Shown piece after piece: positions 1 through 28,896 of a stretch of 64,000 nt of DNA (positions are counted from its first letter, which is position 1; every line of letters starts with the position of its first letter). This DNA is from Macrostomum lignano (lineage: Eukaryota): NCBI GenBank assembly GCA_002269645.1, contig NIVC01002221.1:62001-126000 (forward strand). The letters run 5' to 3'. The notes under the pieces are model-generated. The model searched no databases, was not told the DNA's origin, and saw nothing but the letters and a program-made list of their open reading frames with translations. Made by a program: the position numbers and the translations under genes.

Positions 1-1453
1 GGAGCGACGTTGAAGCAGCTCCTCCTGCTGCTCCTGTACGAGAAAATCTGACTCGCTTGACGAATTTGACTTGTCAGCCTCAATCTGAAACACGTAGGCG
101 GGGTTTGGACAAGTGTTCGGGCTGGGTTCGGTAGAGCCTGCAGTCAGCCGGTGGTTCGCTGAAGGACTCGAATAGAGGCAGCTTTCAACGCGTTCTCCCT
201 CGGCGCGCATCGCCCGCAACTCCTGGTCCATCAGACTGAACACTGACGACAGCAGCTGCGGATTAGCGTGAAACTGCGGCGCTAGGAGGTTATTGCGCTT
301 CAGGCGCTCCTCCCAGTGCGGCGGCAGGTTGACAAATTGTTCGGCCTCGCGATCGTAGACCAGGCTCAGCAGCTCCCGAGGCTGTCGCGGCGGCGGTGTC
401 GGCGGCGGCGAACCGGCATCGTCTTCATCGTCCGTATTGCCATCACCAGCTCGCTGCTGCAGTGGCGGCTCTGCTGCTTCCGCTGCTGTTGCTTCCGCTG
501 CAGGTACAGTTGCTGAGGCCGGGACCTTATTTCAAAAAGATGCTGTCGTTTTGCTTACACTACGTAACAATTCGCTCTGGCCCTACTTTTGTAATCCATG
601 TAGTTCTGTCATAAAATTCCACAATGTCTACAAGACCAAAACGTCAACTCCCGGAAGTAAAAGAGCCATGACACCCTTACGTAAATGCTTGCGGACTCGT
701 GACATGCTTACGAAAAAAACGAGCACGGAGACCCGTACAGAGCCTACCTACAGACCCCATACCCTACAGAAAGCAAGGGCAAGCCATGAACTCGTGCCTG
801 TTTGCGTTACGCGTGGCATGGACTTGCTCGGGAAATGCGGCGTACGAGCGTAATTAGAGAAACTATCTTCCAACTCCAGCGCATTCCAAGAAGTGTGCAG
901 GACTCAGTCTGTTACAAGAAAACTAGAATAAGTATACTCAATCGCATTTTCAGAATGATGTAAGATTTCTTCTCACCTGTTCTGCTGGTGAGACTGGTAA
1001 CGGCTCTTCACTAATTGATTCAGTCGCCATTGCAGCTCGTTCCTCCTCTCCAGGTTCTTCTTCAATGACTGACATGGTGATCAAAGGAGCTGCTTCTGCT
1101 GCTGTTGCTTCTGCTCCTGTTGCTGCCGTTGCAGGTATAGTTGCTGTCGAAGATGATATCGACTGATCAGTGTTGCTACCCGCTGGTTGGGCCTCGAAGT
1201 ACTGCCGCCAATTCTCGGGTATCCCGTCAAAGCCTTGACTACCCGCATTGAAAGTGATGTGCATCACCCGCTTCACGTTCTGCGGCGTTGAAATTCGACG
1301 ACCACCTTTGCTGGAGCCGCTGCTGCCGTCGTCGCCGCCGCCTTCACTGCTACCGTCGCCGCTGCTGCCGCCTTTGCCACCACCGCGATTCCTGCGCTTA
1401 AATAGCGACGCTATGGAGTCTCGGACACTGTCCAGCTTCTTTGTGGAAGACAT
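1..1453 (-). CDS. PAK: p21-activated kinase (group I PAK-like), N-terminal regulatory region; gene continues beyond the left edge
   Basis: Exon 1 is 1453-977 (ATG of MSSTKK; donor CAG|GTGAGA, phase 0). Exon 2 starts at 525 (acceptor ATAAG|GTC, phase 0, in-frame stop just upstream) and is open to base 1; a further in-frame intron near 34-200 is possible. Exon 1 has the CRIB motif ISTPQNVKRVMHITF..GFDGIPENW. Exon 2 has an acidic/PxxP stretch and YD....QF..LP..W...L...N........NPQ, matching the PAK inhibitory switch. The kinase domain is not in the window. Confidence 0.75.
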
Positions 1454-2430
1454 TCTACCACGTCTGAATGCACGGACCCGCCCCGGTGAGCAATGTTGAC
1501 AGTGAATGGGGCTTATGCGGGGCAATCCAGTAATGGTGTGCCGTCAATATGAGAGCTACTAAGGGCCCCAGCTCTGTGCACAAAGCCTACTGCCGGCGAG
1601 TTTTTCATAGGGCAGTTTATAAAAGAAGGGTTGAAAAGCAAAATGTACATCACTTCAATGCGCACTACAGACGCCGAAGAGGGACTGAACTGTACATTGG
1701 CCTGCAACGCTCCTGCGCCTGCGTAGTGAGCGAGATAGAAAATTTCTCAGTCTTTTTATCTCGCTACTTTCCTGCGGCGCTGCGCCTCCCCCCCCCCTGA
1801 CTGACGATATTCACAGCTGTTTTACTGCTTGCCTGGGTGCATTATCCGAGAGTTTACTTCGAACGCTGGAGAAGATTCTAAATTTAGTAACGAAGGTTCA
1901 GTTTAACAGCTTAACATTGCAAGACGAAATGAAGTTCCGCCAATAATCAAGGTAACAAAATCTGTAATGTCGAACAAGCCTAAACTCTGGAATAAGGAAG
2001 AGAAGAGATGATCGAACAGTTCTTTTAGCTGGTTTATAATCTCTGTAGTCGATTAGATTATTAGCATATTTTTGCATCACTCTCCCTACTCAGTATACAT
2101 CTAGCTCGTACTTCAGTATTCTGCGTACACTTATGAGCACACACAATGTGTGTGTGTGTGTGCAGATTCGGCTGGCTTCACAGACAATGAGCGGTCTGAG
2201 CACATTATAATCAACCCCCCCACACTGTTTACAAGTAAGCTACTTCAGCATTTTTGTGTCTGACTAAATTTAGTTGTGCGTTTTCTCTTGTTGTTTTTTT
2301 ACAAACGAATGCGTGACGAGCTTTCATGTACTGTTATGATAGAATTAGAAATGCTTCGATTTGAAAAATTGGATTTTATAGTCGAGTATAAATCTCAGGG
2401 TTTTTTGAGATTTCACATTGCAACGTGCAG

Positions 2431-2706
2431 CAGGGGCGTGGCCACCGGGGGGGGGGAGGACAGGGGAGACATGCCAGTGCTTTGACCTTGTGACGCGGCC
2501 GTTGTGGAAATAAAAAACTTTTCTCCAGGGCGCCAAAATATAGCGCCTTCAGAGCCAAAATGAGTGGCTGCGGCGCCAAAATGATGAGCGCTGACAACAC
2601 CCGATTCTCAAAATAATGGACATGTAGGAATCTAGTCATGTATATGTACATGCCTTATTCTAATTGGCTTTATCCCCCGCCTTAAAATCCATGGCGACGC
2701 CCCCTG
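2431..2706. mobile_element. Putative hAT-like MITE (about 276 bp)
   Basis: Imperfect TIRs CAGGGGCGTGGCCA (2431) and TGGCGACGCCCCCTG (ends 2706); internal GGCGCCAAAAT repeats. The 8-bp flanks match only partly (ACGTGCAG / ACGTTATT). Confidence 0.45.
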
Positions 2707-2856
2707 ACGTTATTTCTGATCGCACCTGTCTGCCCAGAAACAATTGACTTCATGTAAAGATCAATAAGCACATTTAAATGTAATTAGTTAATAGCCGAAC
2801 TACATTAGAAACTCGATCTCTTTCCGAGATCCTCAAACTGACTCTGCTGAAAAGTT

Positions 2857-2862
2857 TTTATT
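2857..2862 (-). terminator. Candidate polyadenylation signal AATAAA of the secreted peptide gene
   Basis: TTTATT on the plus strand about 40 nt downstream of the stop at 2903. Confidence 0.5.
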
Positions 2863-2902
2863 ATTATTTTTTCGACGTAAGCGCGTACAATGGATTGCCG
2901 GC

Positions 2903-3205
2903 TCAGATCTTGATGCAGCTGATCAGCTTGATAGCGTTGCCGCCGCAGTTGGTGGCAAAGCAGTTGGCCATGCGAACTGGGTCGAAGCCGTTGGACAGCG
3001 CACAGCCGTATATGCTGTTGATGATGCAGCTGAGCGAGCTGATGCCGGCCTGACGGACGCACTCCATGTCGACGCTGATGAAGGGCATGACCTCTTGGAT
3101 GAGATCGTTGATGACTTCGTCCTGCTGTTGGACAGTGTAGGCGGCTGATGCGGCCGACGCCATGGCTAGGACAGCCAGCAGGTAGCTCAGAAGCTTCGTG
3201 TACAT
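2903..3205 (-). CDS. Small secreted cysteine-rich protein (100 aa, signal peptide, 6 Cys), family unrecognised
   Basis: Intronless ATG-to-stop ORF with GC-rich codon usage like the other exons. Hydrophobic signal peptide (LLSYLLAVLAMASAASA), acidic spacer, Cys spacing C-x10-C-x7-C-x13-C-x4-C-x9-C, and a downstream AATAAA. Confidence 0.85.
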   Translation of the reverse strand: MYTKLLSYLLAVLAMASAASAAYTVQQQDEVINDLIQEVMPFISVDMECVRQAGISSLSCIINSIYGCALSNGFDPVRMANCFATNCGGNAIKLISCIKI

Positions 3206-5001
3206 TCTTGATTTTGCAAATATATATCGGTGCGGAAGTTGCAGAACTGTGGAATTCTGTTTTCGGAACTTACATGTATCGGCCCGTATTGGATTTTATA
3301 TGTAGAGTGGCAGAGGAGAATGGCGCCATGGAGCTGCAGCTGACGAAATTCTCGGCTCCCATGGAAATTTAGCATACACAATTAACTGGACAGAAAGCAA
3401 TTATTGCCTCATTTTGTGCTGTTGCTAAAGGGCAAACTGCATGTTTCTTAATTGTCCATTGTGACTTAATGTATAGATCTTGGGTGGCAGCAGAATACTA
3501 AACAGTAAAAAACTTGGGCTCTGGTCCGCGATGAGAACTTAACACACGTTGCAGGAAAAAATAGCTGGCTGGTCGAGTGATTTCAAAGCAGATTTCGCGG
3601 CAGTGTAAAAGAGATAACCTCAAACTCAAATGAGTCCGCTTCCCACGATCACATCTGGTTAATTGTTGCCGGGTGTAATTGGAATTGCGTGCCGTTTCGC
3701 TTGACTTAACGAAGTAGAATTACCCATCGGGAAATGCTATGCGTCTTTATTAAACTGGCTACAATAACAGAGATCCATGAATAAATGAAATGTGAAAGAT
3801 TGCATGTACATAAATTTAGTGAAAAGTTGTACATATCAATTAAGAAGAGTTTGCATATGCAGATTTATGTTGTAGTCATATAGGCATATAACATTGATTT
3901 ATATTGAGTGCAAGGTAAGCTGCGCGCAAATTCCATACAGTAAAATACCAGAGAGAAGTATTTGAATTACCATGTATGAACATGCTACAGAATTTCCAAA
4001 TCAACCGGCTTATATATATAAATACAGGCTCGCTCAAGGATAAAGTGTTATGCGATATACATGTACATTAGGGATCCGGTCCGAGACTTGTACGTACTGC
4101 AGTACATAAATCTATTTACAAGTACTCTCGTACATGTTACATATTCTGAACTTGCACACGCATGAATTATACCGGTATATAAGCTGTTGAAAATTAGTTG
4201 AATTCAGAATGGCAAATTTGCCTAAAGTGAGCTGGGGGACCTATATCGCTCGTCTTTTTTCATTTCATAATTAAGTTTTGTGAAATTTAGGTCTTATCGG
4301 CACCTTTTAATCTTCAAACGCAAAATAATTAGTAAACTGCAGTTCCTTTTTAAAGTATCGTCCGACAAGTTGATATTTGTCAGGGCCATTGTTATATGGA
4401 TATTGTAACGTATTGAACTGCATATTCATCATAAAATATTACTAATATATTAAATTTTAGTAAAAATTAGAGACTAAAAAGTTTTTTATTTTGGTTAATG
4501 TGCTTACAGCCACAAAAATGCCTTCTTTGATTTAACTATTAATTATTTTTCTGAGAATTATTAGGCACAAGTTTAACATGATTAAAACGAGCATGGTTTA
4601 TACTGCCCGATCATCACCAAGTGATATTATTTGATTGATAAGCCTACCCACCCTGCTCTACAACTAGCTAAGACTTTTTGAATTTGCATAATTTCAGTAT
4701 AAAAATTGAGTTGAGAAGAAAAAATACTAAAGCTTGTCCGAGTTGTTTTTTCTCAAGTATATTTTCTGTGAAAGAGTAAAACATTTACTTTTGATACTTT
4801 GTCTCGTCTGTCGTCTGTTAGTTTGGGTTCGGGCCTAGGCCTATGATTTTGTAAATATATTGTATAGGCTATTGCAAAATTTGACTATTCTAATATTGCT
4901 ACAGTAAAAAGACGGTGCCCTTAACAAATCAGTAGATGAAACCAGTAAAAAATAGTCTGTTGTTGGTTTTTTGAGTTTAATTATTTTATTCTCAAAGTAA
5001 A

Positions 5002-28896
<23,895 letters not shown>

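Follow-up and report, generated by a model that had tools for sequence, protein, structure and literature searches.

The window analysed here, a stretch of 64,000 nucleotides from contig NIVC01002221.1 of the flatworm Macrostomum lignano (assembly GCA_002269645.1), carries at its left edge a small minus-strand gene encoding a protein with two separate pieces related to the PBD of the p21-activated kinases (PAKs), of which the first bears a CRIB motif and the second does not. A fetched region of the same contig (L005) contains window positions 10000..1 as an exact reverse complement and extends beyond the window edge. The gene starts with an ATG at 1453-1451, and its first exon (1453-977) comprises 159 codons in phase 0, identical to aa 1-159 of the annotated protein P0022, and ends at the donor AG/GTGAGA, with the GT at 976-975. 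It is followed by a 451-nt intron of the GT...AG type (526..976) and by a second exon which starts in phase 0 at 525, directly after the acceptor TTTTTGAAATAAG, and remains open to base 1 (525-1, aa 160-334). Along these exons, all on the minus strand, we distinguish a conserved N-terminal segment MSSTKKLDSVRDSIASLFKRR (1391..1453, aa 1-21), predicted to form an amphipathic helix with a basic patch after it, the CRIB-bearing module 1 (1190..1297, aa 53-88), a proline-rich stretch SPPPTPPPRQP (379..411, aa 198-208), the CRIB-less module 2 (199..378, aa 209-268) and the start of a conserved C-terminal block, YVFQIEADKSNSSSESDF...QRRS (1..96, aa 303-334), which continues beyond the window as LVTVRAVEMPEDIQITQL. 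The N-terminal and C-terminal segments are 62% and 46% identical, respectively, to those of the M. lignano paralogue P0002.

An initial annotation, made from the letters of the window alone, had proposed two exons joined across positions 977/525, and this junction stands: the exons join in frame and the spliced open reading frame (ORF) of 334 aa is a 100% match to the first 334 residues of P0022 (352 aa), which was found in the 90% cluster of a further protein, P0001, and is encoded by NIVC01002221.1 itself. P0001, P0022 and P0023 share this junction in their annotated models. The Mlig_3_7 annotation was built from RNA-seq by genome-guided StringTie/TACO assembly, with gene boundaries taken from trans-splicing and poly(A) evidence (PMC5730564), and the junction and the 3' end, seen here through the annotated models, are therefore transcript-derived. 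Both peptides singled out earlier lie on the minus strand where they had been placed, ISTPQNVKRVMHITFNAGSQGFDGIPENWRQYF (aa 54-86) at 1294-1196 and LVYDREAEQFVNLPPHWEERLKRNNLLAPQFHANPQLLSSVFSLM at 363-229, but the latter had been taken for the whole of exon 2 and constitutes only the conserved core of module 2, within an exon running from 525 to 1. That exon had been missing from the ORF track because ORFs running off the window were not listed. The distribution of the two modules over different exons, which had been presented as a feature of the gene, is not conserved in P0002, where residues 1-232, including both modules, lie in one exon with no intron at the inter-module position; the inter-module intron of the window gene is therefore incidental.

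The modules were also taken for the regulatory N-terminus of a kinase resembling group I PAKs, with the kinase domain to the left of the window and with the CRIB motif and the inhibitory switch (IS) separated such that GTPase binding would be uncoupled from kinase release. Both modules are homologous to the PBD and autoinhibitory region of PAK and the window edge falls inside the ORF, as this explanation would have it, but we now consider it extremely unlikely. On L005 the frame extends for 54 nt past the window edge, as LVTVRAVEMPEDIQITQL, and then reaches a TAG, such that the ORF ends 57 nt beyond the edge with a total of 352 aa, in keeping with gene models from RNA of 351-352 aa. A tblastn search with the human PAK1 kinase domain yielded a best E of 1.7 over the 64-kb window, 10 kb downstream and the allelic and paralogous loci (L001-L005). 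The next annotated gene downstream is TIMP/NTR-like, and upstream lie a 118-aa ORF and then a DIP2-like gene. A Pfam scan of the family proteins (E<=10) returned the PBD only, plus one sub-threshold Calpain_III match, and the relatives are short and end without a kinase (P0002, 286 aa; P0026, 348 aa; P0003, 259 aa, on contig L006). A hidden kinase exon was considered and rejected in view of the stop codon and the lack of any kinase match in the window and the 10 kb downstream. The PAK kinase gene is thus refuted by the very observation that the initial annotation had named as decisive, the lack of a downstream kinase domain and, with no kinase in cis, an uncoupling of GTPase binding from kinase activation is inapplicable as stated.

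In PAK1, the autoinhibitory region is made up of the CRIB motif, a dimerisation strand (Di), the IS helices and a kinase-inhibitory (Ki) tail, and the isolated IS domain is unfolded (PMC3490965). When the whole spliced protein was compared with the Pfam PBD profile (PF00786; curated gathering cut-off 21.3 bits) it scored 48.6 bits over two stretches, both partial, as had been predicted. Module 1 (aa 53-89) covers profile positions 1-37 with 37.4 bits, while module 2 alone covers positions of about 16-56 with 14.1-15.7 bits (E 0.02-0.06), below the cut-off, and module 2 of P0002 exceeds it with 24.0 bits (E 4.7e-5). A PAK-type PBD+IS reference for hhalign was assembled from nine segments taken from the matches of the exhaustive HMMER search described below; module 1 aligned to its columns 2-37 (probability 97.8%, E 1.3e-12), module 2 to its columns 14-57 (probability 92%, E 6e-7), and the two modules to one another across a common hairpin (probability 84%, E 7e-6).

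Module 1 consists of a divergent CRIB motif, ISTPQNVKRVMHITF, a beta-hairpin and a Trp, elements that make up the half in contact with the GTPase in PAKs, with no IS helices after it. Its PDB matches are CRIB peptides of PAK1/4/6, its tail past the Trp shows no PAK1 resemblance (p 0.47) and, in terms of PAK1 (PMC3490965), it corresponds by alignment to the CRIB, the hairpin and the start of Ialpha1. Module 2 carries a hairpin, the motif LPPHW and helices equivalent to PAK1 Ialpha1-Ialpha3, and it lacks the CRIB-strand I-S and both His. A search of all PDB sequences with the module 2 profile ranked 1F3M_A, the autoregulatory fragment of PAK1, first (E 5e-4), with no gap across PAK1 84-128, and full-length chains of PAK2, another group I PAK, came next. 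The gapless alignment with PAK1 given in the initial annotation was thereby found to be right, and ungapped alignment to PAK1 87-131 gives a BLOSUM62 score of +52 versus -42 +/- 13 for shuffles (0/20000 reached it; about 7 SD). The tail past the Trp resembles PAK1 in this module (p 3.5e-4), and the PAK1 counterparts (PMC3490965) read from the alignment extend from the last part of the dimerisation strand through the hairpin and on to Ialpha1-Ialpha3. No counterpart of the Ki tail (PAK1 137-149) is detectable in module 2, as the hhalign and PDB alignments end at the equivalent of PAK1 128-133.

When canonical PBDs were aligned by MAFFT with the complete proteins of the family, each canonical PBD was shared out across both modules, which lie about 150 residues apart. 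The contiguous CRIB-Di-IS-Ki unit of group I PAK is, on the evidence of these alignments, absent from the protein, and IS-like helices occur only in module 2. The comparisons show two PBD-derived pieces in which complementary parts have been kept, and bear out the earlier description of one CRIB-bearing half-PBD and one CRIB-less piece with IS-like helices, with a PAK1-like tail past the Trp in module 2 only. They also sustain the earlier wording "split, partly duplicated": the hairpin region is present twice, and the arrangement is therefore one of partial internal duplication and subsequent division of labour.

Immediately before module 2, the proline-rich stretch contains the class II SH3-ligand consensus PxxPx[RK], and its core occurs in all four paralogue types, as PTPPPR, PLTPPK, PTPPPR and PTPPSR. 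It had been likened, as an acidic PxxP stretch, to the PIX-binding site of PAK, and here the proline-rich part of the claim holds while the acidic part does not: the run DDEDD ahead of the PxxP of the window gene is not conserved in the paralogues. Compared with the PAK PIX-binding motif, PxxPx[RK] is conserved and the acidic run and downstream residues are not, and SH3 specificity is not readable from the sequence.

The family to which this protein belongs is small. A first protein search with the full 334 aa was dominated by low-complexity words, and the 8000 candidates scored yielded two matches, P0001 (351 aa, 98% identical) and P0002 (38% identical), both from M. lignano and both named "CRIB domain-containing protein". 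An exhaustive HMMER search with a profile of these two against 1.84 billion 50%-identity representatives gave 21 matches at E<=1e-3, among which only P0001, P0002 and P0003 lay at E<1e-20, with no true relatives beyond Macrostomum and the source of P0003. The latter (E 1.8e-28) stems from the Logan run SRR28338165 and is encoded on the mRNA-like 990-nt contig L006 by an uninterrupted ORF closed by its own stop codon; the contig also has an AATAAA. Its start probably lies 15 nt earlier than given, at an in-frame ATG (L006 44-58; MPRDAMKQRW...), matching the start of P0026, MPKDIKHRLE. With P0003 as query, UniRef yielded a third M. lignano paralogue, P0026 (48% identical). A second model of the P0026 gene, P0027, lacks exactly module 2 (...SRWSS/ELRKMDL..., the slash marking the point of omission) and could be an isoform skipping the IS-like module or an annotation artefact. 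The three M. lignano paralogue groups and P0003 share the same kinase-less plan in proteins of 259-352 aa with the PBD as sole Pfam domain, which each of them matches above the gathering cut-off, and the same order of parts: N-terminal helix and basic patch, CRIB module, variable linker, PxxPx[RK], module 2, an "SS" motif, a Ser/acidic run and an R..S[LF]V block. The last two constitute the C-terminal block common to the paralogues. No literature mention of the gene identifiers was found and, in public databases, the family carries only the label "CRIB domain-containing protein", the second module being without annotation; it is a previously uncharacterised, lineage-restricted variant of the CRIB effectors.

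Conservation in the family centres on the two modules: module 1 is 69% and module 2 63% identical to its counterpart in P0002, and the values for P0003 are 50% and 47%, while the linkers reach 13-16%. Three near-identical copies of the gene are present in the assembly with intact ORFs, which fits the known redundancy of Mlig_3_7, and none of the 12 differences between them falls in either module. The comparison shows both modules to be under purifying selection. It also bears on a possible origin of the gene as a decaying remnant of the 5' region of a PAK gene, either a pseudogene or a non-functional ORF, a reading that the long low-complexity linkers and a repeat-rich genome with many duplicated blocks might invite. 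We judge this very unlikely and have rejected it on account of the conserved modules and intact ORFs: reading frames are intact in two further paralogue groups as well as in the three near-identical copies, the models of the gene derive from RNA, identity within the modules (47-69%) is set against that of the linkers, and the recent copies show no module substitutions. The second copy of the locus, on NIVC01003638.1 (L001), is 98.6% identical and, upstream of the gene, carries a segment of about 1.6 kb (L001 5936-7562) that has no counterpart at window positions of about 3893-3896.

The reading that we favour, and hold to be reasonably probable, is that the family represents kinase-less, mostly disordered and lineage-restricted adaptors resembling Cdc42/Rac effectors, in which the functions of a partly duplicated PBD have been divided between the two modules. 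Module 1 would bind a GTP-loaded GTPase of the Cdc42/Rac type, which its sequence makes plausible, perhaps with help from the N-terminal amphipathic and basic helix at the membrane. The PxxPx[RK] motif would recruit a partner with an SH3 domain. Module 2, by analogy with the folds of the PAK IS and the WASP GTPase-binding domain (GBD), would probably be unfolded alone and might fold onto a partner surface, either in trans or on another conserved segment of its own chain. No catalytic activity is encoded, and the protein is most likely an adaptor or effector rather than an autoinhibited enzyme.

Several observations count against this interpretation. The CRIB motif of module 1 reads ISTPQNVKRVMHIT and, relative to the consensus ISxPxxFxHxxHVG, it retains the I, S, P and second His and departs at three sites, with V in place of F, R in place of the first His and T in place of G. 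In PAK1 numbering these substitutions are Phe81 to Val, His83 to Arg and Gly88 to Thr, and H83 is among the PAK1 residues changed in mutants dead for GTPase binding. An AlphaFold2 (AF2) model of P0001, computed with the five-sequence family alignment, is of low confidence, with a predicted local distance difference test (pLDDT) score of 42.6 and a chain mostly predicted to be disordered. For module 2 alone a strand-strand-helix-helix-helix model was obtained with a pLDDT of 66 (core 71-79), but the input alignment held PAK-type PBDs, which biases the model towards a PAK-like fold. Foldseek searches found nothing significant for the full-length model, nor for the module 2 model, whose top hits were PAK2 (E 2.9) and CRIB peptides of PAK6 and PAK4, with E of about 3; this agrees with a PAK-like fold but does not count as evidence for it.

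The full-length model does predict a similar hairpin-plus-helix pattern for both modules, strand-strand-helix in module 1 (E66-68, E73-75, H79-86) and the same with extra helices in module 2 (E214-216, E221-223, H227-235, H241-244, H247-276), and it also places helices at both ends of the chain, at aa 4-20 (low confidence) and aa 318-331. The terminal helices raise the question of an intramolecular switch in the style of WASP, in which module 2 would fold round one of the two terminal helices (aa 4-20 or aa 318-331) and keep the SH3 ligand or the C-terminal motif masked until opened by a GTPase or a kinase. Folds of the PBD/GBD type bind helices in cis in WASP, and the predicted helices at both ends of the protein are conserved; we nevertheless regard such a switch as improbable, given the low confidence of the AF2 model and the presence in module 1 of its own hairpin, such that a GTPase bound there would not obviously unfold module 2.

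The duplicated hairpin itself suggests another possible role for module 2, that of a second, CRIB-independent GTPase contact which, with hairpin and first helix on the switch regions, could make the protein a bivalent clamp on one GTPase or a bridge between two. The duplicated part (hairpin, LP..W and first helix) corresponds to the post-CRIB segment of the peptides in PAK-GTPase complexes (1E0A, 2ODB), and tandem full PBDs occur in other eukaryotes. The residues F, LP, W and L do not vary across the module 2 alignment, but they also form the IS core and their conservation does not discriminate, and the CRIB residues that form the intermolecular sheet, the I-S and both His, are missing from module 2. 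We rate this contact as an unlikely, if conceivable, function.

A little less likely in our estimation is a third role, in which the family would provide stand-alone PAK inhibitors and module 2 would dock in trans on the C-lobe (alphaEF/alphaG) of a flatworm group I PAK, in the manner of the inhibitory PAK1 83-149 fragment used in experiments, with inhibition made Cdc42/Rac- or adaptor-dependent by module 1 or by the SH3 ligand. In its general form, that of a diffusible, GTPase-gated, free-standing PAK switch derived from a kinase regulatory region and docking on PAK or another partner, the proposal has the same low likelihood. The position of PAK1 L107 is Leu in all paralogues and that of E116 is Glu or Gln, while that of D126 is not conserved. 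In favour of docking, the solved structure that module 2 matches best is that of the PAK1 autoregulatory fragment within an autoinhibited complex, with PAK2 next, and PAK1 autoinhibition acts in trans with Ialpha2 and Ialpha3 contacting the kinase (PMC3490965). The similarity ends, though, at the equivalent of PAK1 128, and the active-site-occupying Ki tail (137-149) has no detectable equivalent.

Elsewhere in the window, the opposite strand of the locus holds no antisense ORFs other than low-complexity ones, none of them matching Pfam, and an Rfam scan of bases 1-8000 gave no match. At 2903-3259 on the minus strand, flanked by the CRIB gene and the DIP2-like gene, lies a small annotated gene of 118 aa (listed as a 100-aa ORF) with a signal-peptide-like N-terminus and several Cys, for which no Pfam family was found. 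The DIP2-like gene begins near 5002 on the plus strand, and inside its span, over window positions 8223-63067, occur 29 different minisatellite arrays with periods of 8-63 bp and up to 120 copies, together amounting to 26.9 kb or 42% of the window. These arrays account for the extremes of GC and AT skew seen in the composition profile.

The gene illustrates that a PAK-type PBD at a window edge does not imply a PAK kinase, and a tempting mis-annotation is corrected here. If the adaptor reading is right, the family has placed two regulatory jobs of PAK, GTPase binding and IS-type folding upon binding, in separate and independently conserved modules with no kinase. Should module 2 indeed bind a PAK or another partner in trans, the family would be a counterpart in nature of the PAK inhibitory fragments that serve as research tools; should it not, the protein would simply add to the small Rho-GTPase adaptors. 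A test of binding in trans is tractable in M. lignano, because RNA interference is routine in this animal and transgenesis is established. The transgenesis has been documented (PMC5730564).

Comparison with known systems starts from the group I PAK autoregulatory region (PAK1 70-149, 1F3M chain A), to which the CRIB, hairpin and Trp of module 1 and the segment from the end of Di to Ialpha3 of module 2 are each alike, as are the proline-rich SH3 ligands in flanking disordered regions. The flatworm protein differs in having no kinase, halves that are separated by the long linker rather than overlapping, a doubled hairpin, a module 2 devoid of the CRIB core and no detectable Ki tail. With the GBD of WASP and N-WASP it shares the PBD-family fold, in which the post-CRIB region is an autoinhibitory hairpin-plus-helices element binding a helix, whereas WH1, WH2 and VCA (central/acidic) output regions gave no Pfam matches in the family and the PDB matches of module 2 belong to PAKs and not to WASP. 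A 3.3-Mb contig of bacterial size (NCBI/ENA) encodes a repeat protein, P0019, with three copies of LHWTFNSGSQTFDFLPAGWQ, which resembles the module 1 hairpin HITFNAGSQGFDGIPENW (E 5e-4); this is probably a chance or convergent similarity between beta-hairpins.

The other 18 matches of the exhaustive HMMER search are PBD proteins of other eukaryotes or of metagenomes. Only their PBD pieces resemble the flatworm family (E 1e-4 to 1e-10), which does not establish that the architecture as a whole goes back to a common ancestor. Among them are PAKs that combine two PBDs with a kinase (P0013, P0016), a kinase-less protein of Ancoracysta twista with two PBDs (P0008) and proteins with 4-7 PBD repeats (P0004, P0005, P0017); P0004, P0005, P0011 and P0017, on JGI/IMG metagenome contigs, are of tandem full PBDs with no other domain. 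Such multi-PBD architectures, tandem arrays and double-PBD PAKs alike, appear to be little described. In the double-PBD PAKs the first CRIB is of the same NV[KQ]RV[LM]H variant without IS helices and the second PBD carries those helices, an order shared with the flatworm protein, but the second PBD retains a full CRIB and a kinase follows (P0013, P0016).

The remaining comparison is with the kinase-less CRIB effectors, CDC42EP/BORG, CDC42SE/SPEC, the plant RICs and yeast Gic1/2. We know of no second, CRIB-less PBD piece with IS-like helices in the CDC42EP, CDC42SE, RIC or Gic families, and the flatworm protein for its part has no Pfam match to a BORG-homology or other family-specific domain. 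It shares with all of them a short, largely disordered and non-catalytic chain in which the CRIB/PBD is the sole domain, and like them it presumably serves as an adaptor of Cdc42/Rac.

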